A stretch of 64,000 bases of DNA from Lytechinus pictus (Eukaryota): contig NC_087245.1 of NCBI RefSeq assembly GCF_037042905.1, forward strand, positions 29,574,001 through 29,638,000. Reading direction: 5' to 3'. The notes beneath the pieces were generated by a model that was not told the DNA's origin, searched no databases, and saw only the letters and a list, made by a program, of their open reading frames with translations. Shown one piece after another: positions 483 to 25,628 of the stretch; within the stretch, counting starts at the first letter, position 1, and each line of letters opens with the position of its first letter. The position numbers and the translations under genes were made by a program.

Positions 483-2859
483 AGTGAGCCGACAGCTACA
501 TGTACTTTTCAGCTGCTAGCTATTTATGAGCTTGCAGCACACTTAAAATAATTTCTGAATGGATAGTCAAATTTATAAATGTACTTTCAAGCCTTTTCTC
601 TTGAAATCACTGCTCACTGCAATAATATTACTTTTTAAACTTTTTCATGTTATTTTGGCAAGATGAACAAAGGATTATGTCAGAAATTGTAGATGAAACG
701 GAACCTCCCAATCACATCCTTACAACTTGACAAGCCAAATCATATTTCTTTATGATGAAAGTTTTCAAATACCGTTTATGTTTTCTCTGTTTTGTATGTG
801 GGACATCACAGTTTGCAGTGGTTCAAAGTTAGTATTGCAAGCATGATAAGCGGAAGTCAGACTGGACAGTGCAAGGAAACTAGCTATTTCCGCTCCAACT
901 GCCAAACCAATAGCAAAAACGAAATAGAAAACAAATCCAACTAATTCTCCTAACGGTTCTCACAAATCCATATATTCCTCCTCCCCCATATTCACTCTCA
1001 TCAAATACATTGCACGTCTTTGTTCTATCAAAGCGATACCTCCTTAATTAGTTCTATTTACATGTATAAATAAAACAACCATGCAGAATTACTGTGTAAG
1101 CATACTTATAAAAGGAAATGCACACTTCCTTCTTATGTATTCCGTTAAGTACAAAAATTACAAATTAACATCAAAAAGGAAATCCGGAAGTGACAACTCA
1201 ATGATTGAAAACCATCACAACAGAGATAATTGAAAATTTACAGCCCACTGAAAACTAAAATAAAAAACCTATCCACTTGAAGGCCTACAGTGTATCTACT
1301 GGCAAGTCAATTATTTACATAAATTTTGCCACTCTCCATACAGGGAGATTTAGTGGATAACCTCATGCTGCATGTTGGCTATATGAAGTATTATGAATAA
1401 TCTTTTTTTGTAAGAAATTTATCTTTTTTGTAAGAAATGCTTTTTTTAACAACTGTATTAAATTGTGATTTTTTTATCAGAAAAAAAGATGTACACTACA
1501 TGTAATAAAACAACACAATAACAAGTACTGCATCACATTCATGTCTATACATGTAGGCTATATATATGTGCATGGATGTACATGTAATAACAAGTTTCTA
1601 AAATTTTCAAGATTTTTTTTTTCTTGAGCACAATATTATTACTTCCCATCAGTGTTATATATCTCCTGCCTGGCAGTGCAGAGACAAATACTTATAGGCT
1701 TCCTGGGATTGAAACATATCTGAGGAAGTTCGTTCGCGGCTATGGATGAAAGTTAGCTATTTCCTTCTTTCTGTCTTAAGGGAATGTTTTTATTATGACC
1801 AACTGGTCATGCTAACTCACACAGCACACAAACAATTTTTTCTGCAGTTGGCTTCTTTTTTTATACAGTATACATAGAGATGATAGAGTAGTTTAAGAAC
1901 AAACTGTATCATTGGTTTATAAATTATCTTTTTTTTTACAATTTTACAAATTACAAATTTTTAGATATACATGTATATACACTGGGTACATGTATGCATG
2001 TATAATTGTTCTCCATGTATGGAAATCAATTTTGTTTTATTTTTAAATTCGGCCATTAAAAAGTAACCATTGTTTACCTTTTCAATAATTTAAGATTACA
2101 CTAGAAGATGCTTACAATTATTCTTAAGTACCGGTAATAAGGAGGACTTTCTTCCCCACTTTAAGGCCGATATGGCATAATGATTAAACAGTACAAAATA
2201 ATGAGAAAACATTATCTTCACTGATTTGGAATTATTTGTTAAAAAAGGAATTGTCAGATAACCTGCAATTCCCACATGTGCCTGGGCAAATTGTGCAAAC
2301 TTTTTTTTTTATAAAGATCATTCATTTTTATTGATTTGATGTTGAAATATTACAAGGGACCTATTCATAAGAAAATGTTTGTCCATTCAGACAGAGCAAA
2401 GAATTAGTTCAAAGCAGGCTGTATTACAGTGTGAAAAACCCCAATGGCACATTCACACATCATACTCTGCTTAGTGTTGAATTTAGAGAGTTTGGAACAC
2501 AATTAAAATCGTAAAAACACACATTGAATATTTTCCTGTTTACCAAAATTGCATGATTTTGTAACAATACAATTTGCTTTTTATGCAAAAAGGACTAACA
2601 ATCAAGCTGTGATTGACATGGAGCCAAAATATGAGACTGACTCACAAAATTCTGTGATGCTTAGCTGTGGTTGTTTCTGCATGTCTTTTATACGGGTCTC
2701 ATATACTCCATATATACATGTGTATTATTCAGCTGCCACTACACTTCAGTACAGAGAAGTGAGTGGCAGGCCATTCATTCGTTGAACACATAGGTACTAT
2801 CACACACAGCCATATGACCCATCTTCTAACGCTTCACCCCCCCCCCCCCCAAATAAAAA

Positions 2860-3017
2860 GATCTGAAAAAAGCTGAAGAGTGTTGAAAAAGTCTGAAATA
2901 GAAAGAGCTCCCATACTTTTTGTACAGAGGAAAGCCAAAAATAAGCTGAAATTAAGCTGAAAATCAAAAAAAAAAAAAAATCTGAAATCAGATAAAAATC
3001 TGAACTCTCACACCCCT
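2860..3017. mobile_element. Right half of an hAT-type MITE
   Basis: Repeated (a/t)(g/t)ctgaaa subterminal motifs ending in cacacccctg (CAG...CTG terminus). Confidence 0.4.
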
Positions 3018-3044
3018 GGATGACAGTTATATTACATCACTGAT

Positions 3045-3310
3045 GGGAGGTTTAACCTCTAACTTGGACTTTGAACCACAAGGTCAGAGATTCAAATCCC
3101 ACTGCAGTACCAGTAAGCATTCCTGAGGATAGGCCTTTATCTACATTTGCCACCCTCCATCCAGGTGTAGTAAATGGGTACCTGGGAGGAAGAAATTCCT
3201 TGAATGCTTGAGCGCCTAATCGCAGTAAAAAGCTGGGGAATAGTTACATGTACACAGCCCATCAAATTAAGCGCTATGGTGCAATCCTATCATTATAAGG
3301 AGCAATAAAC
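3045..3310 (+). mobile_element. tRNA-derived SINE, degenerate
   Basis: B-box-like gattcaaatccc, central core ccatccaggtgtagtaaatgggtacc shared with the copies at 32150, 33122 and 38905, and an aagcgcta tail. Confidence 0.7.
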
Positions 3311-4424
3311 AAGATTACTCATACTTCATAAAAGTGAAAGATTATGCCAAACCTATATTTCACATTATCATGTTTGTTTTATTTTCAAGTGTTGCATCAC
3401 ATTTAATCAAAACAAAGGGGGTGGTTGGCACTTGGCAATTCAGTATTTGAAATTAGACAAAGAAAAACATTGATTGTTGCTTTACACTTTTACAGGAAAT
3501 TTGCATCTCACTGGTCTGCAATGGCAATACAAACTTATACTTCATCCCCCCCCCCCCTCCATAAAAAAATAAAATTTATTAAATTTATTAAAAAAAATAA
3601 TAAATCAATGAATACATAAATAAAATAAATACAATGAATCAGAAGATATTTACAAGTACCTCTTGTTCATAACAATATTCAGTTCTGATTCACAATCACC
3701 TTGAAATGACGATAAAATACATATTATTCCCTTCTTTCCCCTCTTCAAAACAAAATAGTTGAGATTACAATGAGCAGTAATGACCATGAAAGAACAATTA
3801 ACGATGACGCGCAAATAGGTAGGATTTATATAGAGCAGAATTACACACTCATAACTACTATCCAGATGGCCTTCACTATCCACACAAATATTCCAAACAA
3901 ATATGTGGTTTTGAAATGTATCATAAAAACAACTTTAACAGGAAGTCACCACACTGCAGAGAGGAAACGAAGAAAAGTTGGCAGCAAACACATATGGATT
4001 GCCTGTATTTTGTTTCACAGAAATATAAGGATGAAAGTAATCAATTTTACCCCTTTTTAGATGATGTTCTTGGTTAATGGTTAAAGTAAATATGATTTGG
4101 TAATAAATGAAACATTGCAGACCTGTGGACTACAGGTACATCAAGGAGATGTACATGTACATCCCCAAAGAGCACATTAAGAATGAACTATTTCAAAGGA
4201 CATATGGTATGAATTGCTTGTATTTATATTTATCATGCATATTAGAAAACACCACAGAAATATACAAGTGGAAAAGATCATGTAACATCAATTACACTAC
4301 ATGTAAGTGAACATAGGATTGGGCACATACAATGTACGTGTACATCATAGTTTGTGATGATGCGCTTCAACACATACCATTTCTGAAAAAATAAATTTTG
4401 TCAGATTTTCTTTATCAACTTTAA

Positions 4425-5016
4425 AGGTAAAGTCCACCCCAGCAAAATGTTGATATGAATAAGTAGAGAAAAATAAAACTAGCATAACACTGATACTTTC
4501 ATCAAAATTGGATGTAAAATAAGAAAGTTATGGCATTTTAAAGTTTCGCTTATTTTTCACAAAACAGTGATATGCACAACTCAATGACATGCAAATGGGT
4601 CAGTTGATGATGTCCACCACAATTTCTTTTGTTTTTTATTGTTTGAATTATACAATATTTCATTTTTTACAGATTTGACCATAGGGACCGACTTGACTGA
4701 ACCATATACGCATTATACAATCCTAATTCCACATGTTCAAGGAGGAATTAATCACTGTTTCACTTGACAATGAGGAGAAAATGAGAATATTTCATATAAT
4801 AAAATACAAAAAAAATAGTGAGTGGATGACGTCATCAGTCTATTCATTTGCATACTGACCAGGATGTGCATATAACTGTTTTGTGAAATTAAGCGAAACT
4901 TTAAAATGTCATAACTTTCTTATTTTATATCCGATTTTGATGAATTTTTCAGTGTTATGCTTGTTGGATTTTTCTCATTTTATTCAAATCAATGTTTTTT
5001 GGGGTGGACTTGTGTT
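4425..5016. mobile_element. Kolobok/T2-type MITE with long TIRs
   Basis: TTAA at 4421-4424 and 5017-5020. Termini aggtaaagtccacccc / ggggtggacttgtgtt. Imperfect inverted arms of about 190 bp. Paralogue at 40776. Confidence 0.85.
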
Positions 5017-5456
5017 TTAATAACATACCAGTAACTGAAATAGTTTGTATATGAAAAGGGCACTTACAGCTACATGTGTAGCTGCTTTCCGCAATATAGT
5101 AATGAAAACATCAAAATTACACATGTATGGTTTCCTTTAAACAAGTTTTAATCTCTTAATTTTTTGGCATTTGGTTTTGTTGGTTTTGGTGTTGTGAAGC
5201 TGGGGAGCAAATTTCATAATGCCTATTCAATGCATCTAATGAATGGGAAACGAAAAAGGGGGAATAAATTGTAAATTCTGACTCTCAATTTCTAGAAACC
5301 AATATGAAGCAAATACATGTATTATTGATTAGATTTGTAAAATTGTCATATTACTCCTTTTTATTGCATATTATATGCAAATTACATTGTGAACTGGTGC
5401 TTTAATGTAGTCCATCACTCTCATCTCAATTGGAATCACTTTTAATCCCCACCATC

Positions 5457-5870
5457 GATTTATTTCCAATTCGTCCAATTGCCAACTCGTCTACTACCAT
5501 TTGGTTTATCTTCAGTTCGTCTACTCACCACATGGTCTATATGTACTTTCATTTAGTCTAATGCCATTCCGTCTAATAACCAGTTGGTCCAATAGCCATT
5601 TAGTCCATACCATTTGGTCTACATGTAATTAAACTAAAGTGTTAATTGTGCAAATTGAATGAAAAGAAAATGGGTATTAGACCAACTGAATACTTAATAG
5701 ACGAAATGGTAATAGACGAAATGGTGATTAGACGATATGATTGGACCGAATGGTTATTGGACCAAATGGTTGTTAGACGAAATGCTGATAGGCAGAATGG
5801 CATTAGACTAAATGAAGGTAGACCATGTGGTGAGTGGACGAGTTGGCAGTGGACGCATTGGCAATTTACC
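5457..5870 (+). mobile_element. Foldback-like MITE built from about 15-bp repeats (GG...CC ends, 8-bp TSD family)
   Basis: Left arm of cca(a/t)ttcgtcta-type units, right arm of tagacgaaatgg-type units. Homologous to 25212-25628 and 57479-57883. Flanks ccaccatc / cccccatc. Confidence 0.85.
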
Positions 5871-7105
5871 CCCCCCCCCCATCCCTCCCCCATTTCTATT
5901 CTATGAAATATTGATGCCTTCTTGATTTTTTTTCCTATCATGAGGAAATAATAAATTTATGAGCAGCGAAATTGTATCACATTTCAAAGTGAAGTTCTGA
6001 CACAAGTGTGTGCACTAAAGCAGGATATATGTTTGGCACCAATTATAATCCTCAACATATGACAATTATTTCTCACTTCTCAGGCTTTGAAATAGGAGGG
6101 ACAGTCCTTGCCATTCATTTGGTGACAAGCATTGTCTGAATAGCAGGGAATAATTTTCCTGGTATCGCATCGCAATTAGCTCCATATTCCTTCATGACTG
6201 CTATATTACATGTAGATACAAAGTTTCTTTTGTAAAGCAAGTTTTATCTATGAATTTACAGAACATAGTTAAAAACTTTTCTCTTACAACCAAAAATATG
6301 AATCAAACTAAAGAAGTAAAATTATACCATGGAAGAGTAAGATCAGCTTGACAGAATCATGGCAGAGCCAGGCACATGTATGCTCTTTGCAGTTTTTAGA
6401 GATCTTGCTTGATATGATATTAATACAGGTTTTGTGGCTGATGAATCTGTTCAAATTAGTATTATAAACACATCTTATTTTTAAAGATGGCTGATATGAC
6501 GATGGTTTCAGGATACAAATTGAAGTGAATAGTTAACTCCGATTGAGATGATGATTAAGTTGTTTTTCAAGAGATGCAGGTCTAACATTAACCATGTAAC
6601 ATTGCAAATGTATCAAAGAGTGGGTACTGTAACCGTGGAAAGTGGAAACCTTAATTGAGATTGGCTGCTGAGCACTGCTAACAAGGTAATACAATAATGG
6701 CAAAGTTACTATAGTTTTGTAACTCCTGCTGAAACAGGTCCCGGATGTATAGGCCTAGATATCAATGACACTCAAATTTCATAACCTTGGCATCAAAGTA
6801 ATTTTCATTGGAATGCTAGCAGAAAAAGAAAATCGAATCCTACAACTACAAATTTCCTTTTTAATATGACTTTCTACTTCTTGCAACATACAAGAGTGTA
6901 TACTATGATTCAAATCTGCTTTTACCAAGTTGATAAGTTTCAAAGCAAAACATGATTTATGTGTAAGATTATCAGTGTATATAAAGTGTGTAGACTGATT
7001 CTTGAATGAATCAGAAGATTCATATTTGCTGTGAGGTCACTCCTTTCTAAACATTTGCTCAAATTTTATAAATGTATTACGTTCTTCCAAAGCATCCAGG
7101 GTATC

Positions 7106-7268
7106 CTGGGGAGCGTTTCATGAAAGGACTTGTCGGACGTTTTATCCGACAAGTCCCATTTTATCCGACAGTTACCATAGTTACAGTATCTCTCAGCCAA
7201 TCAACATCAGAGAAAGATGTCAGATCTGACAACTTGTCGGATGAAAATGTTGATGAAACACTCCCCAG
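7106..7268. mobile_element. Short TIR element (163 bp), no evident TSD
   Basis: TIR ctggggagcgtttcat / atgaaacactccccag, with internal ttgtcgga/tccgacaa inverted motifs. Confidence 0.8.
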
Positions 7269-7418
7269 AACTACACAAGTTTCCCAGAATTTAACTCTAC
7301 TGCCACAATGGAGTTGACCTCTACTCAGAAACTGGGAAATAATAACTCGGTACCTTGGTTCTGACACCCTCACAAAACAAGATGATGCATCTTGCATTGT
7401 ACAAGAACCCCCCCCCCC

Positions 7419-7452
<34 letters not shown>

Positions 7453-7597
7453 TTTTTCCTTGAAAATCTGAAAAAACATTTTGTATATAATCTGCATGAG
7501 CTGATCTGCTCACCACCCCACCCCATTCCTTCAAAAATCAAATCAATAAAATGTCCATATAAAGAGTTTTCATACCCACTCAATTGCAGAAAAAAAC

Positions 7598-8080
7598 CTA
7601 GTATTTTCTGATAAGGAATTCTACTTACATCGGAAATATCAGATATTGTTTAATTGTTATATATTTTTTAAACATATTTATGTTAATATTGTTCCCTCCA
7701 GATTGGGCTACACTGTTAATGAAAGAATACTAAATAATTACTCAAATAGAAGCCTTCAGACCGAGTGGATAATACAAGAACTTGTTCAGGCCTCAAAATA
7801 TGAACCAGAACCAAAGTTTTGATGGAGTACACGTAGCAACCTAAATGGCCTACAAGGGCCAAGCGTACACACTGGATTGGACAAATTTCCATAAGTTGCT
7901 TTCACACTACAAGAAAACCCACAACTTTGGACAAATGCCTGATAAAATTTTCGCAATTTTGAAAATTATTATAATAACTCGCAGGATTTTCTTTTTCCAG
8001 GATATAGACTCACTTGAAAACTGAGAAACCTGGTATTCTTTGATTGATAAAAAAGTCTACCACTATCAGAGAATACCAGG
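7598..8080. mobile_element. Degenerate members of the ttcagaccg Harbinger-like MITE family
   Basis: Segments ttcagaccg, tttcacact..aa and gtattttctgat..g..atcag match the elements at 27514, 46570 and 50284. Confidence 0.45.
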
Positions 8081-8795
8081 CCCCAACATATGAGAAGTCA
8101 CGACAAACAAACTCAATTGTGATTGATCTGAAATTGCTTATAGGGCTGAGTCAAAACGTTTCAAACACTGTTCAAATGACTGTTAAAAGCAAAAACATTT
8201 ACTAATTTGGCCAGATAGATTTATAGATCTAGGGCCATGGATTTAAAGATCTATGCAAAATAAGAAATATAAGCAACTTTTGGTGAAGGTTTTTTTTACA
8301 TCATAAAACGATCTTTCAGAGTCAAGGAAGAGGTGAATATTTTTCATTTTCTTGATAGTTTTCAACTAAATCTGAGTATGGAAAATAGATGGCAATTTCA
8401 TGGATTTAAAGATGCAAAATATAAAATTTAGCACCTTTTGTGGGGAAGGTTCTCTTTTTTTACCCTCTCTGGTTAACAAACCGCCTGTTTATCAATTGCG
8501 TTTAAACATTTTTCAAAATAAACGTGATGACTCGGGCCTAATTAATTTAAGAGATATGAACTTCATCAATCCCACATTGATTTTTGTTTGAATCTATCGC
8601 AACTCTCTACAACACGGTGCCCTGGTATCCCCAAAGTGAAGATCCCTGCCAGTTATCAGATACTTAAATTTCAAAATTACGAGGCCATTTCCAGGATTTA
8701 TTCAAGAATACCTTCAGGTACAGGCTTTAAATATATACAAGAGCTGGCTCATGGCCGTGCCGATAGGAATGCATAGATCATAATGGAATACTCAC

Positions 8796-8912
8796 CAATT
8801 TATTCTGGCCACAACATAGTGAAAACGAGGGATGCACTCAGCTTCCCCGATTATACAACAGGACTCCGGACTCCACTCACGGCAATCTGGGGTTATGGAA
8901 AAGAATCTAGGA
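8796..8912 (-). other. Candidate exon (117 nt; alternative acceptors give 111 or 91 nt)
   Basis: Minus strand acceptors ttcctcag| (AG at 8913-8914), cctag| and ccccag|. Donor TG|GTGAGTAT at 8795. One open frame (PRFFSITPDCREWSPESCCIIGEAECIPRFHYVVARINW), but no recognisable protein. Confidence 0.45.
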
Positions 8913-8914
8913 CT

Positions 8915-9647
8915 GAGGAAAAAGAAGTGTGGGATGGAGACAAGAAGGGGGATGGGAGAGGAGGGGGTTGGAAGAGACAAGGGGAGGAATATCGGAGGCA
9001 AGGGCAAAGGATCGATGGGAGACGTATTGGTGAAAAGGAATAGAAGATGAGGTACAGGACAGGAAATACAAAGAGAGAGAGAGGAAATGTGAGATGGGGA
9101 ATAGGAGGCAGTAGAAGATGGGATGAAGAAACAAGGTGATGATGAGGATGGGAGGGGGGCAAGACGAATAAGGATGGACAGATGAACAAATGGAAAAGAC
9201 AGAGGATGAAAAAATATGGTGATGGGTGAGAAAAGAACAATTAGGACATGAGGAAAGGAAAGATGATAGGATAGGAGAAGGTGGGAAAGAGATGCCAATG
9301 GAAGGGAGGAAGGAACATGGGAAGAAATGAGAAAAATAGTAGTGGCAATAGGATGGAAGAATTGGAAAAACAAATTTAAAAAGAGGAAAGAGACAGGGGG
9401 TGGGTAATGGAGGGTGAAGAATAGCAATGTCGAAGGGAATAACAAAAAAAAAGAAAAGAAAAATTGAAGAGTTTGCAAAGGAATTTTAGATGGAAAGAGT
9501 GGGGGCAGTTATTATGTAAAGTGTGGGGGTTTGGGGGTATTTTGTTGGTTAGGTGGGATTAGTTTGGAGGGTTAAAGAAAGGTAAAAGAAAGAAGGGAAG
9601 CAAAAAACACGAAATAGATTAATATCAAGATCCAATTGCATATTACA
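8915..9647 (-). repeat. Non-periodic purine-rich (+) / pyrimidine-rich (-) tract with no AG on the minus strand
   Basis: No CT dinucleotide on the plus strand between 8915 and 9647. This tract produces the spurious F/S/L/P-rich ORFs in the track. Confidence 0.9.
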
Positions 9648-10065
9648 CTAAAACATGATAAAGAATCCCAAGCTTCGACCCTTGATGAATTCAATACCAT
9701 TCCTGGCCTTGACATCTAACTGCTGCAGCAACACTCAAGTCAAGAGCTAGCTGCATACACTACTGGCACAGGGCAAACAAATCCCAAATAACTCACAATG
9801 TAGGAGGCCTTGCAAAGTCAGATTCCCCCTCAAAGTCCAAAACATACTATATATTACCCTGCAATCATGCAATATAACAAGAACTCTAGTGCACATAATC
9901 ATGATTATAAATGATTGTTCCACTTGCAGCACTGGGCTGTATCATTTCAACACACAGATAAACCCAAAGATAAAAAAGATTAATAGATATGAGCATGGAA
10001 ATGGATATGTAGCGTCAAGCACAGCACTATATACTACCAGCTGAACAGCGAGAATATATGCTTAC

Positions 10066-10330
10066 AGTATATTCACAATATATCTTCCAAGTTGAAAACA
10101 TAGACTTGAGCTGAGAATTATTCCTTGAGAGTCCACACTGCTTGCAGTGAAACGGTAACAACAGATTAGGCAGGATAATTCCACATTAAGAGCATGTTCT
10201 ATAGAAATGCAGTACTGAAGAAGTGCTGTCCGTGAAGGAGTCAATTATTTTTTTAATAGGGACCGAAAAGAACAAGCCACCTCCACAGCAATAGTGTGTT
10301 GTAAATGATAGGCAATGTATACACACAACA
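10066..10330 (-). other. Candidate upstream (first or 5'UTR) exon; 5' boundary uncertain
   Basis: Donor ACT|GTAAGC at 10065. Short ATG frame MFSTWKIYCEYT (10101-10066). Unique, repeat-free sequence. Confidence 0.3.
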
Positions 10331-10820
10331 CGGCTGGGCTGAAGGAGCACGGTTTTCTGGCTGTGCTGGCTGAGCTGGGCTGGCAAACGCTCAATTCTAT
10401 GAACGCTTCCCCTATATGAGTGTACAGCACGGCGTAAACACAAAAAGAGCATAGCATAATGTCTGCTTATGCTGTGTGTGTTGGTGTGTGTGTGAGGAGG
10501 CGCTGTGTGTTCTTATGTTGGCCATAGTTCGGGGGCAATAGAACTCCCTGTGTTAGATTTATTTAGTGTGTGTGCCCTGTATTTTCTTGGCCTACTCAAT
10601 ATGGGGTAGCCAGCCAGCCAGCCAGCCATGCACGCTTCGATAAGCTTGCTCGGGTTCTGCTGCAATGCCAATCCTCACTTTGCGGGCACAACAGTTCTGT
10701 TTCGAACCTTGTACATCTGTAATGTCATGGATTCTGGTTCCCCCATAAACGTGTTTGAACATGGGGAGCCAGCAAGAGAGAGATAAAAACATTCTTGGCC
10801 GTTTCACTCACTCACCCTGT
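10330..10820. promoter_or_regulatory. GC-elevated unique island, possible promoter or enhancer
   Basis: Repeat-free with higher GC and CpG, (GT)n and (GCCA)n runs, and a Fox-type GTAAACA at 10434. Adjacent to the candidate exon. Confidence 0.3.
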
Positions 10821-11033
10821 CCCTGGTAATGAGTAATGGGTCAACCGGTTCTCAGTGTTTCTAATTAGAAACATCCACAAAATAAATCTAGAATGACACA
10901 GACATCACACCATAAACTTAGTTATACTATAAATTCAATAGCAGTTGGTCAATAATTTGAACAGTAAGTCATAAATCTTGCCTGTCTGTCAGGATCAAAC
11001 CAGAGAATATCTAATATGGTCTCAAAATTCTAA

Positions 11034-11346
11034 GGCCCATATTCTGAAGTCGGGTTTAACTTAAACTCTGGTTTTAAAGTGTGGTTTAAGTATGGATAGC
11101 CAATTGTTACATAAATCACTAACAGTAGAGATATCATATTTCAGCTCATTTGGCTCTTAAATCATTCATAATTGTCTAGGAAGTATAAATAGATGATTGT
11201 CTTCACTATCGATGAATCAGGAAAGAGCACAGTAAACATAAGAAACATACAACTTTAAATACAAATGTTGACACTTTTGGCTTCCCATAATTTTAGCAGA
11301 GAGTTTGACTATGGTCTAAGTTAAACCTGACTTTAGAATATGGGCC
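11034..11346. mobile_element. TIR MITE (ggcccatattctgaag family)
   Basis: TIR of about 33 bp: ggcccatattctgaagtcgggtttaacttaaac / gtctaagttaaacctgactttagaatatgggcc. Degenerate copies at 42108 and about 47510-47760. Confidence 0.85.
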
Positions 11347-11380
11347 AAAGGGTCTCTATCTGTGTTTCTGCAACTTACAG

Positions 11381-11975
11381 AGGTCCAGGCTAAAAATAAT
11401 TATACCTAAATTAGATAGAGAATAATTAATCAAGCAAAACACAAAAAAACTATCAAAATCTGATAACAAATTACAAACTTTTTAATGTCAAAATTTAGCA
11501 AGTTTGTGAAAACAGTTACCGGTATGTGCATGCATGTCTTCATGAATATTCATTAGATTGGCTGATGATGTCTAGTCCCCACTTTTCATTATCTTTTGTT
11601 ATTACATGAAATCGTAATCATTTCATATTTTCATACAGGTGTGTATGAGCTCCGCTGTAACAAAGTAGTCATCTAATTTTGTTCTTTCTTATTTCTTGGA
11701 CAAAATTTGAATTAGCATAATTTCATCTAATAAAATGCAAAAAAAAAGTAAAAGGGGATTTAACATCATCAGCTTGCTCATTGCATATATTCAAGAATAC
11801 CTGCACAGAAACCAAATTAGTGCAAAACTTCAACATTTCATAACTTTGTTATTCCTTGTCTGATTTTGATGAAATTTTATTGATAAAGTGTTTGTTTTGT
11901 TGTTGGTTTTTTGTATGAATTTTTCTTTATCTGTTCAAATCATATTATTTTCAGCCTGGAGATCTGGACCACTTA
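11381..11975. mobile_element. Older Kolobok/T2-type MITE related to 4425-5016
   Basis: Ends gtccaggctaaaaataat / attattttcagcctgga. Internal catcaaaat, aaaacagtta and ataacttt motifs are collinear with the 4425 element. Confidence 0.6.
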
Positions 11976-14458
11976 AAAACAAATTTCCCCAAAACAAAAT
12001 CACATATTTCTCGAAATTCATTGGTATTCCTTGGAATTTTCCATTTTTTTACCGTTTAAAATAAATTCGGACAATGATGCAGCTAGCCGGAAGTAGGCCT
12101 ATAAATGCATAAATTGTTGACCAGAAATAAAGCAATTCAAGACCTCTTTCATTGTCCAATCAGTTCCTAAACTTGTGATAAAATTAATAATGCAAGCATT
12201 AAAGCGCAAGATAATATTGGGCAACATATATTGAGGCAATTATTCTAGAAATATGAAACTTTTTACTTTCAAATATCATTTGGAATTTTCGAATTTCCCT
12301 TAATTACCTGGTATTTTAATCTTCCTGAAAATTACAGAGAAAAGGTCGAGATTTCCCAGTATTTGGGTTATTTCCTGGACAGTAGAGACATTGAACTCTG
12401 TTGAACAAAATGTGAAATAGTTGAAATATATTTTAATGATTCATTGTTCATCGCACCTTTCTGGGAAAATAAAAATGTTTGAGGGCAGAAGAGAACTGAA
12501 CGACATCTTACAGAATATGGGTTTATCAAAAATAAATGAATATAGCATGATATCTCGTAGATGCCTGTAACTAGGAGATACAAGTAGCATGCTTCATGTA
12601 CATTTTCTTTTATTCACACAAAGAAATTAGTTTTTGTAATATATTTCAAAGACCTCCATCCGAGTTATATTTAAGTATAATGCAAGTGCAAGGCAAGTCA
12701 AACGCAAGTCAGGGATGCATGTTAACTGGTTAGTTGTGAATCTTCTTGTATTCTTTGAATATTTGTTGTGTAATCCCATTCACAGAATACCTACTCACTA
12801 GCTAATCCTATTCAAATATCAATGATTAGTGCTTACACCTATTGCAAAACACCTTTATTGTGCTATACAGAGAGTAGGAGATGATCTCTTAATAAACTCA
12901 TAATACAAGGGTGAAGAAGATATTTTTTAATATTTTGTCACAGATTAAAAGCATCAGAAACAATCACTATTTAATATTGTCAATATTACTTGGAAAACCA
13001 AGATTCTGTCTGATTATTTTTTTTCCCAATAAATGCAATTCCATAATAAACAAGATTCTTAAAAACTACATTAAAAATTGTGGTAAAAAATGAAAGGAAT
13101 AGATTCTGAAATAATGGAAATTGACACTATATTGTTTTTACAGTGCGCCAGCCCAGCAGCACTGCTGGCCAAAATCAGAATATGAACAAATGGACAACCT
13201 CCGAGTCATACTCTTAATAATGTCACAAAATATTTCTACTATTATCTCTGACAAAATTTGCATGATAATTATTACTCTAAAGTGAAGTGCCATGCTGCCC
13301 ATTCACTTCACTAAAAAAAACACTAAAGCTAATGAAAAACAATCATGAGCCTGCAAGACCTCATAATTTTATGAGTTTTAATATTTGCACTTGCCCTGAA
13401 TGTAGCTAAAATAAATAATTACTTGAACATGAATGCACTACAACTATTTTTGGCACAAGGTCTACATTAATGATCAAGATTCTGCCTATTCCTTCGATAA
13501 TTAATCATAACTTTTTCTAGGAGGAACAACCATAGTAGACAATTCTTATTCTTGATATTGTGAGCAACTGTCAACCATTCTTCACTATAGGCTAATGTGC
13601 CAATAGAATACTGGCAACAAGACACAAAAAGGGGCGCCTTTGAGCATTATCATCTCAACCAAAAGGAAAAGTGGCGAACAAAAAGGAAGATATAGGTCGG
13701 CTCCACGAAGCTTAACCAAAGCACGTTCAAAAAAGTTAGTGAACCTGTGTAAGTTTGCCAGTATGACAATCAACACAGACTGTACAAAAGAGAAGCAAAC
13801 TTGGCAACAGTTTGATATTGGCAACGCTGAACAGATATACAATTGACAAATGCAGACAATGATTATGAATAATATTCAAAATTTCAGCTCTTTCATCTTC
13901 CTTTCTTTATGCGGCTTCAATCTGCCTGCAACACTAGCTTGCGGTTGAAAAGAATATGTTTTTGGAGTATTTGCAAAGCCTAAATCTTCTTGATCAGATT
14001 TTAAAATAAAGACCTCCTATTTCAATGAAGTGAGTAATTGACTAGCGTGAACAGTGAGCAGGGATGTGAGAGACTGACTATTGGTCCTCTGGTTGCTTAC
14101 CTACAAGCATTCATGCTTTCTTGGCACCAGGGTTAGCCTTTACACAAGTCTCTGCGTCTGCTATAACGTGTATATCAGAAACAGAGCGACTAATAAAACA
14201 AGACTACGGTAATCACTAAAAACCCTAGTGAACCGAGAAAAACCAAGGAGCCTGGCTCGGATGTCTTATGTAACAATCACAGTGAGCCAGACTGGTTTGG
14301 GTGATTCGCCGTTTTTTCGCCGTTTTTTCTCCCTTTTTTCTCCCTTTTTCCCAACAGAAAAACGGCTAGAAAACGGCTAAAAAACGGCGACAAAAAAAGT
14401 GTACCGACTATGGAAAGCTAACTGTATGCAACAATGATTTTTATCAGAATAAAATAGT

Positions 14459-14700
14459 GAATACCTCCCTTCGAGAAAACGGCTACAAAACGGCTAATAA
14501 AGGGCGAATACCTCCATTGTGGGAAACGGCTACAAAACGGCTAATAAATGGCGAATACCTTTCTTGTGGAAAACGGCTACAAAACGGCTAATAAAGGGCG
14601 AATATCTCCCTTGTGGAAAACGGCTACAAAATGACTAATATAAGGGTGAATACCCCCATCGGTAAAAAAGCCTTCAAAACTGCTAATAAATGACGAAAGG
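14459..14700 (+). repeat. 47-bp tandem repeat, about 5 copies (subterminal array)
   Basis: Unit gaatacctcccttgtggaaaacggctacaaaacggctaataaagggc. Confidence 0.85.
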
Positions 14701-15518
14701 CACAAAAAAGTAATAAAACTAGTAATAAATAGGACTTAACAAGTAAAAATCAGCAAATAATGTTGTACCACACAAGCTGGTGAGTGCATGTACTTGAGAC
14801 AACTTGGAATAACATTCATACTATCGTAATGTATGGTAGTGGATAATACCGAACAATCTTAAGTTTTTTCAATCATATCAAACCTTTTCTTAAAATTCAT
14901 CAAAATTCCACCATAAAGTAATCACAAATACCTACTAAAAATAAGAATTTTAAAATGGCTGAAATCAATTGGCCTATATCTGAAAAAAAAATTCTCAGCT
15001 TCCGATTTCGCCCCTCTTCGCGTGTGAAATCTTTTGTCACTTGTGGTTCGTATACCAAACACATGTTTTCTGCTGTCATAAGAGAATTAACAAAAATCTA
15101 TAATTAATTCATTTTCACCGTATTTTGTTATGTTTAGAAAATTGATACTTCATAAATATGATTTATTTTCATCATTTTTTCTTTTGGAAAGATGCTGCAA
15201 TGTGCTAAATGTATTAAATTATACTGTACTGTATTATTTTCTTTATCTTGCCACTTGTTACGATCGTTTGCGTTTGCGAAGTGGGAATGGCCGCACCCTT
15301 TCGAGAAAACCAGGATAGCTTTTCTCGAAAGGGTGGGATGAGGGAAGGGAGTCAAATAAACACACCTTCTCGGGACAACCAGGGGAGCTTTTCACGAAAG
15401 GCTGTGTTTAATAGTTTTCTGAGCCAGTTGTTTCTATGAAAATTATTCATCAAATAATAACAACAACATAATATTAATATAGGCGATTGGTAGAAATGCA
15501 CATATGGGGGGGGGGGGC

Positions 15519-15725
15519 CTGTTACACCCATAAATGTGAAAATCGCTCACAAATGTAATAACACTTTACCCACAAATGTAACAACGTCCAAAAATGTAAT
15601 AACACTTTACCCACAAATGTAATAATTTAACCCACAAATGTATTAATGCACTTTACCCACAAATGTTATAATTTTTGATCGCCCACAAATGTAATAATGA
15701 CTTTACCCAAAAATGTAATAAATTT
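15519..15725 (+). repeat. cccacaaatgtaataa minisatellite, probably the left arm of a truncated TGT-terminal element
   Basis: Starts tgttacaccc, followed by about 8 imperfect 20-26-bp units. No matching inverted arm found. Confidence 0.7.
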
Positions 15726-16620
15726 GAAGGGATTTGATCCGTTCTAAACTAAAATCTATAGTAATACGTTGATAAAGCACAAAAGTGCACAAAAGTCTTT
15801 TTCCAGACCCGGTTGTTTCAAAAAGTATAATAGTCCAAAGTCTTTTTTCCAGACCCAGTTGTTTCAGAAATTATAATATAAGTCTAGTCTTATTTCCAGA
15901 ACCGGGTCTGGAAAAAATTATTTGTCCTTTTTATATCATAATTCTTAAAAAGAAAATTTCCTCCTTCTTTATACATTTACACACATAATATGTTTATCAA
16001 GAAAAAAAATAATTATGTTATCGTCATCATCATCACGGCCGCCATCAAAATCATTACCACCACCATCATTCTCGTCCTCTTCTTCCTCTTTATCCCCCTT
16101 CATTATCACCACTATCATTATTTAATTACATCACAAATACACTATCATCCTCGATTATCATTCCGTTTTAACAAACGCTGACTATTGTAGTAGGTCCGTG
16201 ATTGGACAATGTGGTTTGGGGGATTCATCCGGGTTGAAGAAACACAACGAGAGATCACAAGTGATCATTGCGTAACTTAAATTGAAACAGATTCTTCTTA
16301 TTGTTAGGTGTTCACTGCAATCTTCACACCTTCCATTGTTCACAAAACGTGCGAGACGGTGTAATTAATTGACCCCAGTGAAGTCGCAACAGCTAGGGCA
16401 TTCACTCCAAAGCTTCTGTTATACATTTTAAAAGTTATCTTTCCTATAAAACGAAGTAGCTCAAGTGCATTGGGGTCTTTAACACTATAAAACACAGTTT
16501 TGACCAATATACCAACGAGATCGAACCAGCTCATGACATCATGGAGGCTGATGTATGCCTCCCCAAGAATTAAAGTATATCGAAGTGGTTTGTTGGATAC
16601 TACTTAGGCCTACATGACCA

Positions 16621-16752
16621 ATGGCCCAGTCACATTTCCCTTACGGCGGGTCAAACACATCCGTTAAGACTTTTTTGTACCATCTAAACATTAATAAAAC
16701 GGCTGTTTTCGACTCGCCATACGCCGCGGTAGGGGAAATGTGACTGCAGCAT
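16621..16752. mobile_element. Small TIR MITE nested in the CMC element
   Basis: TIR cagtcacatttccc / gggaaatgtgactg. Confidence 0.7.
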
Positions 16753-16789
16753 CAGGAACATGAAAAGTGCCTTTCGCATTATCATGCGA

Positions 16790-17130
16790 GAGTGAAAGCA
16801 AGAAAAGAATGAAAGAAAGGAAGAAATATGGAATGACAGAAAGAATGAAAAGAGAAGAGGAGAGGAAGGGAACCAAAAAATATAAGGAAAGAAAGAAGAA
16901 AGGAAATAAAAGGAAAGTAAGAAAAGGAAGGAAGGGAAGAAAAAAAATGAACAGAGAGAGAGAAAGGATCAGGAAAGAAAGCTAGGAAAGATTTGAAATA
17001 AGATAGAACAAAAAAAAGCAAGCAGGAAGGATAGAAGAAAGGATGAAGAAAAAAGAAAGAAAAGAAAGAAAATGAACGAAAGAAAGCAATAAAGAAAGAA
17101 ATGAAGAAAGGATTAAAGAGGAAAAAAATT
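16790..17130. repeat. (AAAG/AAGG)n-like low-complexity tract
   Basis: Degenerate purine microsatellite. Source of the K/R/E-rich pseudo-ORF. Confidence 0.85.
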
Positions 17131-18449
17131 AACCTTCAAGCAAACAAAACAAATGTAATCATCTAACAAAAAATCTTACAGATATTTGTCTTTTTTATGA
17201 TATATTTAAAAATTGTTAGAAAACTAAAATGTTTTAGAAACAAATAAAATTTGAAGGTGAAACATTGTCAAACTTTAATAAAATGAACATCGCGGCATCA
17301 CACCATCTCTATCTCTATTTGTCTTGTCTTATTGTTATCGGTGCGAACACGAAAAAGACTCATTTTCACTCAAAACAAAAGCTGAAACAACTAGATCGAT
17401 CTAGTAATGAAAACTCGATAACTTGCTTCTACGACTACATCACCAAATCATTAATCTGAGGATCCATATATGTTTAAATTTCCTGCCGATTTTGTGATTA
17501 TTTTGTTGGAAAAACTGTTAATCATGTGAGATTGTTCACTTTGATTCAGAGTTTGCAAATCTCCTCCGATCATGCAAGCCTGCCACACACCACACAGGCA
17601 GGCAGGCCAAGCCACGTGCGGCAGCTGGTACATGTACACTGTATGCTAACTTTGCGTGTGTGTGTGTCTGTGTGTAGATCCCAGAAAATCACGGAAAATG
17701 ACTTGCAGTTTGAATTGATCTGAGTTATTTTTTAACTTTGTTTTTTTTCTCTCTCTCTCTTCTGTATTTTTGCGTGAAATATGGGAGAACTTTGTAAACT
17801 TTAAGCATAATTACTTAATAGCGATTTGCATGAAAAAAATTACGATACAATTTTGTAGATTACTTCCCTGACAACCTGCGTGCCAATATTCGGCGGGAGA
17901 AATTTTGCATTTTTTTAGTAAATAGGGCAAATTTAAGCTCTTTAACTACATTCGACTTTGAATGATTTATTGTTCTCCATCATAAAAGACCACAAATAGT
18001 AGAGGGGGATTTGATATTATGCCCCCCTTTCCAAAAAGTGAGGGACACGTCCCCCTCGGGTTCCCGCCCATGAAGAAGGGAAAATAAGAGTAAAGAATAA
18101 AGTATTCAAAGAAGTTTCAATCCAATTCAATTACATTTTATTTTCATCTGATTGACATTTTATCAAATTCCACATGAAATATAAAAAATGTTGAAATAAA
18201 ACAATTATATGTAAATAAGATTTATGAAAGAAGGCGTAACCCCCCCCCCCCCGAAAGTAAAATAAAAATTGTTTACATGAATGAAATGAGAATTATTATT
18301 AAATATTACCCATGAAAACTAGAGCTTATTTCCAAAAGGAGTTCTTCAGAAAATCTGAAGTTGGCAGAAAAATTGCAAATATATATTCTACGTCTTCTAG
18401 TCACTTTTTCTCAATGCATATCACACATTTTCACATTTCTTTTTGCCAT

Positions 18450-18840
18450 TTTATGCAATGCACTTCGTACTACCCATTCGCCCTTTTCTTTTTTTTCTAA
18501 CTTTTTTGCTGTTTCATGCTCTCACCTCTTACTACTCAGCTGCCCTTTTCTCTCCGTTGTCCCGCCACTTTCTCTCCCTTTCATGCAATGCACTCCCTGG
18601 GACCCATTCACAATTTCCTCTCCGTTTATGCACTGCACGCCTTATACCCATTCGCCCTTTTGTCTCCGTTTTCTCGCCCTTTTTTCTCCGTTTTATGCAA
18701 CGCGCGCCTTACTACCCATTCGCCCTTTTGTCTCCGTTTTCTCGCCCTTTTCTCTCCGTTTATTAGCCGTTTTCTTTCAGTATCTTCACTCCTCTAACAG
18801 GATCCTCGTCCTTATCATTCGCCGTTTTCTCGCCGTTTTC
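18450..18840 (+). repeat. Tandem subterminal repeats (about 60 bp) of the CMC element
   Basis: Recurring atgca..gc..ctta(c)tacccattcgccctttt(g)tctccgttttctcgccc. Confidence 0.7.
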
Positions 18841-20213
18841 ATGGGGAAATCAATAGCTCCGCTAATATTAAACAATCATGGCACTCCATAATAATTCAAG
18901 ATTTATGTAAGAAACCTAATGTAGCCGTTTTTTGGCCGTTTTTTCTCCAAAAATTCTCCCTTTCTTCGCCCTTTTCTAGCCGTTTTCAAAACGGCGAAAA
19001 AACTGCAACTTTGAATTTCCCATAGGTTATAACACACAAAACGGCGAAAAAAGGGCGAAAAAACTGCAGTGGCTCACTGTGAATAATTCCCACCTTGAAC
19101 CCTCTACCAGAGAGGTAGAAGCCAATTGGTGGAGGTATCACTCGCATCAATGAACCCGCAGTCAGAAGGGAATATACTGGTCTAATGACGTCACCAGCTT
19201 TGACAATGCGGATTGGCTCATCGGCATGCTCATGAATAATTCATACCTTCACGTCTCCTCCAGAATCCTATTGCGCGTTCACCAGGGTGTCACTAGTCGT
19301 GTCTAAGCCATTACTTCACAACGAATAAAGACAAATCACAAGGCCTTGTGAAAATGCTACAATCGGGTAAAATAACCACCAAAACCCTGAGTAGTAAGAC
19401 ATTTTCTCTTAAAATATACATATACATATATTCATATATAAATCAGAATAATGCTTACTGAGTCACAGAATCTGTGGAGAAAGAATAGGCCTATATTATA
19501 CAGCACAGCCTACCCCTAAACCGGATAAAATCATATGCAAGTTTCATAAATTTGCTTGGTCCAAATTTTTATAATTTACAAGTAGACTCTAGGCCTATTT
19601 AATAACAATTAACAGATATGCCTATTTACGAATATTGGAATACCATTGCATTAGGCACAATCAATCTCTTTCTTTTTTTAGGGGGTAGGGGCATTGCATA
19701 TCAGGAAAGTAAAAATGCAGAATTTCCTAACTGAAAATGCCCTCTTTATTCAGCAACTACTGCAAAAGTCATTTACTGTATGCCCAGATATGAATATGAC
19801 CCGAAATACTCAATGTACATGTACATGTTGAATTGCAAAGAAAACTTGCAGTTCCATACACTCTGGGGTTAATTTGAGATGCCAAAGCAAGGAAAACCTT
19901 ATGGAATGTACACAAAGGCTTACAACACCATGACCTCCCCCATCCATACTATGCAGGACTATGTACACAATCCTGCACAACAGCTGTTGTGGTGGCGAAA
20001 ACTAGGCTAACACTATTCAGATGACTGTAAAACCCCCTCCTGATACCCGCTAGTCTATGACCTGCGAGCGTTTTTATTTTCCCCTTTTTTTCAGGGGGGG
20101 GGGGGGGGGTCGTTGTTTTTTTCAAGATTGGGACCGAAGCATGAATTTGAAAACAGGGCTAATAGTGACCTACATGTAGTACAGCTGATCTCAAACTTGC
20201 TAGACATTCTACA

Positions 20214-20325
20214 TGAAAGTGCCTACAATTTGATTATATTCAGTTACAATGATGGAATGGATTTTATTGAAAGTGCCTACAATTTGATTATATTCAGTTA
20301 CAATGATGGAATGGATTTTATTGAA
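20214..20325 (+). repeat. Perfect 54-bp tandem duplication
   Basis: gaaagtgcctacaatttgattatattcagttacaatgatggaatggattttatt at 20215 and 20269. Confidence 0.95.
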
Positions 20326-20400
20326 CTGGTTGAAAATTAACTTGAAATCGCTGAAGGTGATTAATATCCACAATCAAACAACCAACTACAATAGTCTCAT

Positions 20401-21129
20401 CGGGGGGGGGGGGGTCACTCACCACATATTGTGCTACCCACGCGCGTCCACGCACTTAAAAAATGGACCCTAAATGGTGTAAACCCCACGCAAACCTGGT
20501 CCAACAAAAACACACCCTAAATGGCGCAAACAGGGTAAAAAATCTACCCTAAATGGCGTACACGAGTAAACAAATATACCCTAAATGGCGTAACCCCCGC
20601 ATAAAAAATATAGGCCTACCCTAAATGGCGTTACATTCCACCACTACAGACAGTGCCATACCAACATGGCCGTATGCAGGAGGCAGTTGCCCCCCCCAAA
20701 AAAAAAAAAAAAAAAAAATTGAAAACTTACATATTTTACTGGAAAAATTTCACAAAATTCACCAAAAGTATGCAAGAAATCTTTCAATTCCACTTTAAAG
20801 AGAGTAAAAGCGCCCCTATGACAAGCTTGGTCGCTTCGCTCCCTCGCTTTTGAGTTAAAAAAAAAAAACTTACGCGTGCTGGCCCCCAGCGAAAAATTTC
20901 TGTGTACAGCCATGCATGCCAATAATGTGTAATTGAATGTATACAGTATATAAATACAAGTTTAGTACCCTAAACGTCGAAAACAGCACTTGAAGCTGAA
21001 GAACACCTTCTTTTAGAAAAACGCAGACGAAGTTGAAGGGCTGAAAACAGACCCTTTTCGATGCTTTTTGTGGAAGCACGTGCGTCTTACATGATATGGC
21101 GAGTGACCTCCCCCCCCCCCCCCCCCCGG
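20401..21129. mobile_element. Poly-G/poly-C-ended MITE (MULE-like)
   Basis: Ends C(G)n-tcactc / gagtgac..(C)n-GG. TSD agtctcat at 20393-20400 and 21130-21137. Five internal accctaaatgg repeats. Confidence 0.85.
20665..20914. mobile_element. hAT-type MITE nested in the poly-G element
   Basis: TIR catggccgtatgcag / ctgtgtacagccatg. 8-bp TSD cataccaa / catgccaa. Confidence 0.8.
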
Positions 21130-21799
21130 AGTCTCATGTACAAAACAGGTGTAAAAGAAATTAACATATTTTCCTGATTTATTGCCTTTAATGGCAACAA
21201 AGTCTTTCATGTCTTCCCTCCAAGACCAATGATTGTACCATCTCTCTAATTAGCATTGGGCAAGAACTGAGAAAGTAATTTGCTCAGCTGGATATTTCCT
21301 TGATTTTTTCACTGATTTACTCCCATATTTATACCATGGTCATGTATGTACCTTTGATTATCTCCTATTTTTTTTAAATCATGGTCTGTTTTGTAACTAA
21401 GTTTACAGTTGTCTATTTGTTTAATGCAATCTATATTTGATGGATTTTTTTTGTGGACTTTATTTCTATGTTTTAGACCTCATGAAAATCGAATTCAAAA
21501 TATCTAACAAATAAATATTTAATATAAACTTGAGAACAAACCGTCTTCCTCAGAGTCCTATCAAATGCTGGAACAAAAGAGAAGCGCCTTGAATATCAAT
21601 GTCACAACTTGTACGTACAGCTTTGACATCAAGCTTTTGACAACAAGAATTCTATTTCCAATCTCTGACATGGCTTGCTGTGCATTGTTATGTAAACTGC
21701 CTCTGCCGCAATGACCCGAATCGAACAAGAAGTTGATACTGTACAACCAATCATGATAATTATGACAATGGGTGAAGTTATTTCGCATCACGTTGGTGC

Positions 21800-21990
21800 T
21801 AGTCTGCAAGCAGACTCAAATCTGACACTCACAAAATTACCCCATGTCTAGAGTGAAGACTAAACTCCAAACTCCACGTCTGTGACAAATAAGAAGCAGC
21901 CACAACACATCAGTAAAACCTAGTCTCACTACTTCAGACTCTGCAATATGCATAATATGAAACCAAAGGTCTGTGCCAGCAGACTACAGT
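21800..21990 (+). repeat. Left arm of a diverged inverted repeat (two TAGTCT...AGACTA modules)
   Basis: Reverse-complement similarity to 22945-23140. Confidence 0.7.
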
Positions 21991-22944
21991 AGTGCCAAGG
22001 CCTTAATTACAGGTAGGCCTAAACATCAGATTCTTTGAGCCATGCAAAATGATGTATGAATAATCGTTCTCCAGGCAGACTTGCAAGCGCAGAACAAATA
22101 AACCCTGTTGGAAAAATAAAAACCCATTCATCGATCATGACAAAAACACTGGTTATTGGAAAAACAGAATAACAGAAATCAATTTTGGTTCAGAGAAATT
22201 CAAAATTTTAGGGATCAAAGTGTAACATGAAGAATTAGCATAAAAACTTGTTTTGCAGAAACCAATAGAGAGAGAGGGAGAAACAAAATCACCAAATACA
22301 ATCATTTTTAAATTCTAAAATGATTTTGTTGACAGGCATTGGTATTAAAAGATAAACTCTTGTAGTACTGTTAACAACAGAAAATAAAATCTTATAATTC
22401 AACATAACTTACACACAATAATCTAAAAAAAATGATAAATAGATAACTGCCAAACAATTTTTCAGCAATATTTATGAATACAGAGTAATGAGCAAATGAA
22501 GATCAGAAAAAATGAGAAATGACTGAAAAATGCCAGTCTATTTATAAATGGTCCTACATGTTGATTCCTGTGTTAGCTACACCTTGATAAACATGTGGTA
22601 ATAAAATGAACATACTTCAAGAAAGCCTGAATTATTTGTTCAGTTCTAAATATTAAAGCATTCTGGCATATCATTAACACTTTAGGATTGCTTCCAATCA
22701 TTTCCTATCGAAAATAATTTTCTATACCAAAACAAACTTATTTTAAACAAAATATTTTTTTCCAAGTAGGATATGATGAAAGAACTAATATTTCATTTTT
22801 CAAATTTTACAAACTTGAGAAATACCCTATCATTTTTTAATGAATATTTCATCTAGCGGCAGCACCCACTATGCAATACCCCACTATCTGAGTTTGATAC
22901 ACAAATGCCAAATATTCATCTATTCTGCATGGATAGGGCCTACG

Positions 22945-23140
22945 GCTAGTCTGCGGGCACAGACCATTGGTTTTTTTGCATAGTGCATATTAAATACAGA
23001 GTCTAAAGTAGTGAGACTACTTTCATTCGTGTACTGTGGCTGGGTATTCAACACACACATAGGGTTTGAAGTGTAGTCTCGACCCTAGACACGGTGCTAT
23101 TTGTCAAAATTTTGAATTTAAGTCTACACATGCAGACTGG
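22945..23140 (-). repeat. Right arm of the diverged inverted repeat
   Basis: For example tagtctgcgggcacagacc...gagtctaaagtagtgagacta matches the reverse complement of 21921-21986. Confidence 0.7.
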
Positions 23141-24046
23141 TCTATGGCTGGCAGAGGCCAGCGTGTGCAATACAATGTGTGAAAAGTGCCGCATAGCACC
23201 ACCCCCTGGTTTCCCCCGCACTATAACGCAACAATCGAATACGTGTGCTTGCTATCCAAACTAGGACTCATTATACATCCCTCTCTTTGCATAGCCTGTT
23301 TGACATTCACATCTGGCTTGGGAAATATTACACATGAAGAGAATATTAATTGTCCATAAAATACTCTGCTGGATGATGAGCTATCACTATTTCACATCTC
23401 AATCAAACACGTCTGTACATTTGCTTTGATCATGCTCATTCTTAGTACCATTATACTCCCCTCTCCCCAACTATTTTCTGTACAAACATATTCTGTTTTA
23501 AATCAAAACCGATATAATTAGCATCTTATATCAGATTTTCAAAACCCTGGGTACAAAAAACCTGAAAATCAATATAATTCAGAATTCTGGCTTGATTTTA
23601 ACAGTGAACATTTATGTGAGCCTACTCCAGACCTCGCTGGCTCTTCCGAAAAAGTGAAATGGCACAATGGAACCCAAAAGTTAATTGCCGAGTAAGGTGT
23701 AGGCCCTAATGACTTTGTTTCAAGTGCGGTATCATAGGTTGGCCCTGTTACCTTTAAAGCACAATTTCTTCTGATGGCAATACTCACCAGTCATTACTAT
23801 TAAAGAAGATGAAATTCACAAATATCTCACTGGCATTTCAGCTCCCGCCCACCTGTTTCTATATATAGCAAACAGAGACTACAGTACCACTCTACCACTT
23901 TTTCAAAATAGTTCCCACTCCTGAAATTCATAACCAGTAGTCACCTTTTAATATTCCACCCACTCATGAATATACACAACAAGGCAATCAATGGGCTATT
24001 TGGTCACTGCTGGTCGATGGAAAGTAAAATATTACTCTTTTTATAT

Positions 24047-25000: not shown

Positions 25001-25211
25001 TTTCATAACCCCATACTTTCCTTAACCCCAGACTATCCTAACCCCATATTTTTCATTCAAACCATCTTTCTTAACCCCACACTAATTGCTTAGCCAGGTT
25101 TAAAGACCCAGACCGGACCCAAAAGTGAAATTGACAAATTATATACCAATCAAAGGCTTTAACTACTTAACACAGAAATGCAAGCTAGCCCGGAGACAAA
25201 AGTGTGGAAAT

Positions 25212-25628
25212 GGTAAATTGCCAATTCATCCACTGTCAATTCGTCCATTCACCGCATGGTCTACCTTCATTTAATCTAAAACCATTCCGTCCATCAGCAT
25301 TTCGTCTACCAACCATTTGGTCCAATGACCATTTGGTCCAATCTTCAATTCGTCTAATCACCAGTTTGTCTATGATCATTGGGAGTAACCAGTTTTGTCT
25401 CATATTCGTTTTATTTTCATTCACTTTGCCCTATCAAAACTTAGTCTTATTAGACCAAATGGTAAATGGCCTAAATGGCTATTGGACCAACTGGTTATTA
25501 GATGAAATAGTGAGTGGACAAAATGGCAATTAGACCATGTGGATATTGGACAAACTGATGGTAGATCAAATCATAGTAGACCAGTTGGCAATTGGACGAA
25601 TTGGCATTGGACCAAATGAAAATAAACA
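25212..25628 (-). mobile_element. Foldback-like MITE, reverse copy
   Basis: Perfect 8-bp TSD gtggaaat at 25204-25211 and 25629-25636. Homologous to the 5457 and 57479 copies. Confidence 0.9.

Follow-up and report, generated by a model that had tools for sequence, protein, structure and literature searches.

An eight-base word recurring at TA sites of a sea-urchin genome: probable excision scars of Tc1-type transposons

A single eight-base palindrome, TACATGTA, is scattered through a 64-kb stretch of sea-urchin DNA (hereafter the window, G000:C1:29574001-29638000), and each copy is probably the scar of a Tc1-type DNA transposon that, after insertion at a TA, was excised again in the germline. 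Insertion would duplicate the TA. At excision, the transposase would cut the non-transferred strand at a point two bases in from each element end, leaving each flank with a two-base 3' overhang (in top-strand terms, CA on the left and TG on the right). Such overhangs could not pair with one another, and end joining that filled them in and ligated them would yield TA-CA-TG-TA, a net gain of CATGTA. The first-pass annotation of this DNA had proposed Tc1/mariner excision scars, a reading now supported by insertion at TA, the constancy of the word, a symmetric target motif and a resident Tc1 family with CA...TG ends. We infer two-base-stagger excision as the origin of the scars, as we do the element family responsible. 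Positions below are those of the window, and features are unstranded unless a strand is given.

The 56 matches to TACATGTA in the window compare with a mean of 1.49 (maximum 5) in dinucleotide-shuffled sequence and with 3.6 expected from an order-3 Markov model of the window, or 2.1 when the scars are collapsed, in good agreement with the ~50 copies against ~2 expected that had been claimed before. Among non-homopolymer 8-mers of the window, it is the most frequent. The matches represent 51 independent loci, with tandem arrays at three of them, and their 25-base flanks show no kinship between sites within the window; the copies therefore do not form a repeat family. Counting against a background over the whole 811.7-Mb genome, a check proposed in the first-pass annotation, gave 224,046 copies (0.276 per kb, so that the window is 3.2 times denser than the genome average) versus 29,568 for TATGCATA, a TA-bounded palindrome of equal base composition. 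This is an excess of ~7.6-fold, or ~190,000-200,000 copies. Runs of C or G are frequent in the window as well (CCCCCCCC 95 times and GGGGGGGG 73 times, against <1 expected from dinucleotide content), some of them variable-length runs within the 4.8-kb element described below.

Comparison of repeat copies indicates how the word arises. At the originally flagged site (5620-5627), which lies in a foldback-type repeat copy, direct reading gives ggtcTA-CATGTA-attaaac (5616-5633), while the paralogue near 57653 lacks the six bases and reads ggtcTA-attaaac. The empty 21-mer of this site, CATTTGGTCTAATTAAACTAA, has 116 matches genome-wide, and of all genome copies in which the flagged TA has gained 1-8 bases, CATGTA was found in the window's own and in no other. 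The same foldback-type copy holds a decayed scar, TATATGTA, with one C-to-T change (5538-5545): positions 5534-5550 read ggtcTA-TATGTA-ctttc and the paralogue near 57575 reads ggtcTA-ctttc. The third example that had been offered did not hold, as 50631 and 46877 are not paralogues; they have ~11 bases in common (tatcTActatt) and gave no blastn alignment.

A larger sample comes from a high-copy SINE-like repeat (about 33127-33415), in which a scar lies at 33258-33265 and the family consensus, recovered from read clipping, is empty. The empty 22-mer at this TA occurs in 646 copies genome-wide. Ten copies carry 1-8 extra bases there, which in five are exactly CATGTA, and these five filled copies are spread over five chromosomes. 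One of the ten insertions is CCGGTA, creating TACCGGTA, a word also present in the window at 2129 and 11517; this and other small insertions at TA, such as TATA, look like footprints too. Site 32206, queried genome-wide with the window's own flanks, matched in the window alone, because divergence from the family consensus has altered those flanks. As to the repeats themselves, a first look gave at least 3,697 candidates for the SINE-like family of 33127-33415, and very high-copy short repeats occupy 33127-33415, 32128-32311 and 29184-29367, with summed contig depths from thousands to millions.

In these families, empty paralogues have TA where filled ones have TACATGTA, and the proportions of empty to filled copies (116:1 and 646:5) mark the long form as derived. 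The alignments thus bear out the earlier claim of insertion rather than substitution on three counts: a six-base length difference, empty consensus forms and filled copies that are private. As read from these copies, the six bases are an insertion at a pre-existing TA, and neither a substitution nor a retained ancestral allele. The inserted word is constant whatever its flanks.

A young 4.8-kb interspersed element (14278-19082) serves as a clock. A copy on a different chromosome (C13:21550104) matches it at 100% identity and dozens more do so at 85-99%, and older copies carry ~500 extra bases at element position 17804. Approximately 107 kb of copies (loci L001-L030) were aligned. Private TA-to-TACATGTA insertions occur in L002 (two) and L004 (one), L026 has a private CATGTA insertion in 8-base form, and L027 has a CCTGTA variant. 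L002 is 98.4% identical to the window's copy, yet it has gained two private scars, with two further scars in its 1.5-kb flank; activity at this locus has therefore been very recent. Of 14 distinct six-base indel entries in the family, four are CATGTA (one L002 event being aligned twice, which leaves three independent events), one is CCTGTA and two are GGCCTA rows that record one single event, while the bulk of the remainder look like tandem duplications. The TACATGTA at 17629-17636 is a consensus feature of the family and does not count as an event of its own: of the 22 copies spanning this position, 21 have it and the other (L014) has a one-base variant. Three large insertions in copies of this element were considered as possible Tc1 elements caught at a scar site, and none of the three qualified: one is of Harbinger type with a TTA duplication, another has ATATGG... 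inverted ends, and the third adjoins a TAGGCCTA site and does not lie inside it. The non-autonomous element of Harbinger/PIF type found in one copy of the 4.8-kb element (L033, G000:C15:22009600-22010400) is 465 bp long; its inverted ends read GAGGCCGTTCTCA..., and it is flanked by a duplicated TTA.

The scars are not distributed indifferently among TA sites. Empty sites reconstructed at all 51 loci were set against the other 4,758 TA sites of the window. A at -3 (equivalently T at +3) is found in 60% of scar half-sites versus 32% at all TA sites (p = 3e-8); at -2, T reaches 42%; and at -1 the composition is 30% A, 33% G, 20% C and 17% T, with G raised and T lowered (p = 6.5e-5). The resulting motif, A-N-R-TA-Y-N-T, is symmetric around the TA. 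Symmetry of this kind is typical of transposase integration, in which the enzyme engages both strands. At 50 further sites, the first of 100 listed from the start of C1, a tally by hand agreed, with A at -3 in 30 and T at +3 in 28. A neighbouring TA of the SINE-like repeat, flanked by C at both -3 and +3, was empty in 629 copies and held small insertions in eight (three of them TATA, the plain TA duplication), none being CATGTA. This 0 of 637, against 5 of 656 at the favourable TA, lies in the predicted direction and is of marginal significance.

Besides CATG between TAs, the first-pass annotation had listed other footprints, and these fared differently. In the window the CATG form is strongly enriched, TACWGTA is mildly so (27 versus 7-10 expected; 165,416 genome-wide), and TATGTA and TACATA show no enrichment. 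Within the window, TACWGTA does not follow the patches of TACATGTA. The 9-mers TACANTGTA are not enriched genome-wide (58,741 versus 47,576 for the control), and the middle base of the first 100 has no G/C bias. A stagger of two bases would keep two element bases on each side, and the 7.6-fold enrichment of TACATGTA beside the lack of any for TACANTGTA is what such a stagger would predict. Pattern tests of this kind need intact flanks and see insertions, not deletions, at excision sites; among the insertions visible with intact flanks, one complete product dominates.

The state of decay of the word gives a measure of age. Its one-mismatch derivatives number 69 in the window versus 35-46 expected, an excess 0.4-0.6 times that of the intact words, where a constant, long-running process would give ~1.14. 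The scars are therefore young on average, and if made in a single pulse would date to roughly 6% divergence. If an eight-base word decays neutrally, and sites are assumed to change at 5e-9 to 1e-8 substitutions per generation, ~0.28 scars per kb would call for scar-forming hops at a rate of only about 0.01 per gamete in each generation, a plausible figure.

The genome does encode an autonomous Tc1 transposase. A profile search with DDE_3 (PF13358) gave at least 150 near-identical genome matches over the cut-off, mostly with an open 364-amino-acid frame. They define a young family of 1.9 kb with inverted ends of ~198 bp and copies 99.4-99.7% alike, bounded as TA-CACTACTC...GAGTAGTG-TA (in short, TA-CACTAC...GTAGTG-TA) and with 444 exact ends genome-wide. 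Its copies (L034-L053, e.g. L036:448-2349) often stand as head-to-head pairs or truncated twins. The expectation that CA...TG families of Tc1/mariner type would be found was thus borne out: this family is resident, apparently active and flanked by a TA duplication, and its terminal bases are those of the scar centre, a correspondence that speaks for compatibility only. The family also resembles the scars in favouring A at -3. However, its sites are nearly always A-TA-T: among 100 ends tallied by hand, A stood at -1 in 91, and -3 was A in 68 and T in 32, with nothing else. At the scars, A stands at -1 in 30% and G is as frequent as A. Given a target stricter than the scar motif, the CACTAC family is therefore probably not the main donor, and is at most a minor one. 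As claimed from the start, the window itself holds no intact source element; a search for TA-CA...TG-TA elements there returned none, its sole matches being artefacts created by the scars themselves.

Within the window the scars fall in sharply different patches. Two stretches are dense in TACATGTA, 497-6214 (13 copies in 5.7 kb) and 26116-60228 (40 copies in 34 kb). Between them, 6215-26115 makes up 31% of the window and contains only three of the 56 copies (binomial p = 2.5e-6 for the depletion), and counts per 2-kb bin are over-dispersed (variance/mean 2.1). Patchiness is likewise seen at the start of C1, where density ranges from ~0.1 to ~2 per kb over tens of kb. A second word, TAGGCCTA, equivalent to GGCCTA added at a TA, occurs nine times in the window versus ~0.5 expected (at 6750, 12094, 16605, 19486, 19590, 20611, 22014, 37640 and 61369), and seven of the nine lie in the TACATGTA-poor stretch (binomial p = 0.005 for the excess; Fisher p = 5.7e-6 for the two words together). 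One of these, at 16605-16612, marks a young subfamily of the 4.8-kb element, 14 older copies being without the six bases. Genome-wide, 48,105 copies of TAGGCCTA were counted with a flank filter that passes ~68%, which scales to ~70,000. The two words have the same palindromic build, TA-xy-y'x'-TA, with centres CATG and GGCC, and occupy different patches; TAGGCCTA, which is enriched roughly tenfold, appears to have been left by a second type of element, with GG...CC ends.

Since an insertion of equal size is enriched exactly where TACATGTA is rare, selection against six-base insertions does not account for the border. CpG observed/expected, taken as a proxy for methylation, was rejected as a candidate along with G+C content and TA density, none of which correlated with scar density (Spearman about 0). 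A search of the window's six largest ORFs against Pfam gave no match. Of the sampled words of 6300-14200, ~5-7% occur in sequencing runs of both organism codes that were presumed to be RNA. This suggests a conserved expressed exon in that stretch; a candidate is the 228-amino-acid minus-strand frame at 8792-9478, for which Pfam gave no match.

The tandem arrays previously reported in the window are present. A double scar, TA(CATGTA)2, lies at 32326-32339; TA(CATGTA)3 lies at 53534-53553 with a decayed unit (tatatg) just before it; and two short arrays, TACATGTACATGTA followed by TACATGTACATG, adjoin one another at 57376-57397. Such TA(CATGTA)n forms could come from slippage, or from a new insertion into one of the two TAs of a scar already present, each providing one good half-site. 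Were sites re-used uniformly, ~0.6 double events would be expected, a figure that the motif raises somewhat; three loci are observed.

Several explanations other than excision deserve weighing. That assembly or sequencing error makes the word is barely conceivable: nothing specific speaks for it beyond the word being a short palindrome, and an artefact would fit poorly with a target-site preference, a patchy distribution or the presence of the 17629 word in copies of a transposed element. In addition, the scar at 30778 is crossed by contigs from other sequencing runs, independent and from two organisms, whose gap totals are too small for a six-base deletion. One contig (X8 record 17, ~99.5% identical to the window) aligns 882 of its own bases to 875 window bases with nine gap letters, eight inserted and one deleted. 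The other (X2 record 2, ~92% identical and of a different organism code) aligns 284 to 287 with seven gap letters, two inserted and five deleted. Independent data thus contain the 30778 scar, and a related species probably has it too, although the X2 contig may be a paralogue. Origin by point substitution, for instance through CpG decay of TACGCGTA, which could in principle produce TACATGTA, is very improbable when filled and empty copies differ by six bases in length and not by base changes. We judge just as poorly the converse, an ancestral long allele with six-base deletions elsewhere; the TA..TA direct repeat could mediate such deletions, but the empty form is the family consensus at both sites counted above and the filled forms are private to single copies. 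Slippage of a hexamer, or tandem duplication of a CATGTA-like stretch followed by microsatellite expansion, would account for the arrays at 32326, 53534 and 57376, and at ~10 of the 51 loci atg stands directly before the scar, with cat directly after it at several, where duplication would give the same sequence. Most empty sites, however, have no CATG homology (e.g. GGAATTA/CTTCC, GGTCTA/ATTAAAC and GCGAATA/TCTCC), and decayed units would not place A at -3 so far above T at -2 and G at -1, all of which makes slippage an improbable source of the scars.

Closest to the excision reading is a TA-specific process that is not selfish, in which a domesticated transposase, or a repair or other enzyme activity, adds CATGTA within chromatin domains. 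It would suit the sharply different patches and the mismatch between the scar motif and the only active Tc1 family characterised; moreover, no scarred site turned up that is occupied by an element in another copy or allele, so that excision itself is deduced rather than observed. Nevertheless we regard it as unlikely, as the symmetric motif is typical of transposase integration and two centres, CATG and GGCC, in different patches fit two transposon families. We know of no alternative enzyme that adds CATGTA at TA.

Returning to excision, the mechanism is the known footprint of Tc1/Tc3, and the differences lie in scale, in the dominance of one product and in patches specific to each class of scar. 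In Caenorhabditis elegans, Tc1 and Tc3 likewise target and duplicate TA, end in CA...TG and leave the donor flanks with a 3' overhang of two bases (PMC4490562). Both overhangs filled and joined give TACATGTA. The overhangs left by Tc1 excision are non-complementary, and breaks in worm germ cells are mended mostly by polymerase-theta end joining, with 26 kinds of footprint in 103 revertants (PMC4490562). Where worm footprints are many, one is dominant among the visible insertions in the sea urchin, fixed ~200,000 times, and a single dominant product needs a different repair bias. Sleeping Beauty and mariner elements belong to the same superfamily, duplicate the TA and leave scars by end joining of transposon-derived overhangs, but they cut three bases in and leave TA-CAG-TA or TA-CTG-TA, a gain of five bases (PMC7827188), and TACWGTA is only mildly enriched here. 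The nearest parallel in the searchable literature is rice, where footprints of mariner/Stowaway TA elements are likewise a genome-wide source of small indels (PMC4423477). The rice data, however, comprise hundreds of transposon polymorphisms (insertions plus excisions) with varied and complex excision outcomes (PMC4423477), whereas one 8-mer is the top non-homopolymer 8-mer of the sea-urchin window. The same literature contained no link of TACATGTA to Tc1 footprints and no report of such scars in sea urchins. What looks new is that the scars are young on average and that very few copies of TACATGTA lie between 6.2 and 26.1 kb, the stretch in which TAGGCCTA clusters.

An element that moves by cut and paste normally leaves hardly a trace at the site it has left, and repeat annotation therefore greatly underestimates past activity. 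Scars of the kind described here would make the hops countable, as each seems to leave the same eight-letter word, ~190,000-200,000 of them above background. Dates could be drawn from the proportion of intact words to decayed ones and from dated repeat copies that carry scars, and the hops could be mapped as fields that differ between the two scar classes. The scars are also a previously unannotated source of small indels, amounting to half of the 1-8 base insertions at one favourable TA. Thousands of them could serve as low-homoplasy markers when populations or species are compared, and they show directly which repair route double-strand breaks take in the germline of an echinoderm. A single Tc1-like lineage with two-base cleavage may have made ~200,000 recent germline hops, with a GG...CC lineage beside it and each confined to sharply bounded fields, a scenario that we put forward tentatively, as possible rather than probable. 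If it is true, the bounds of the fields could be set by family-specific targeting of chromatin or transcription units, or by very short-range hopping, and the scars would be a readable map of the landing places permitted to each family. Echinoderm germ cells would then mend such breaks by fill-in and ligation, and not by the polymerase-theta route of worms.
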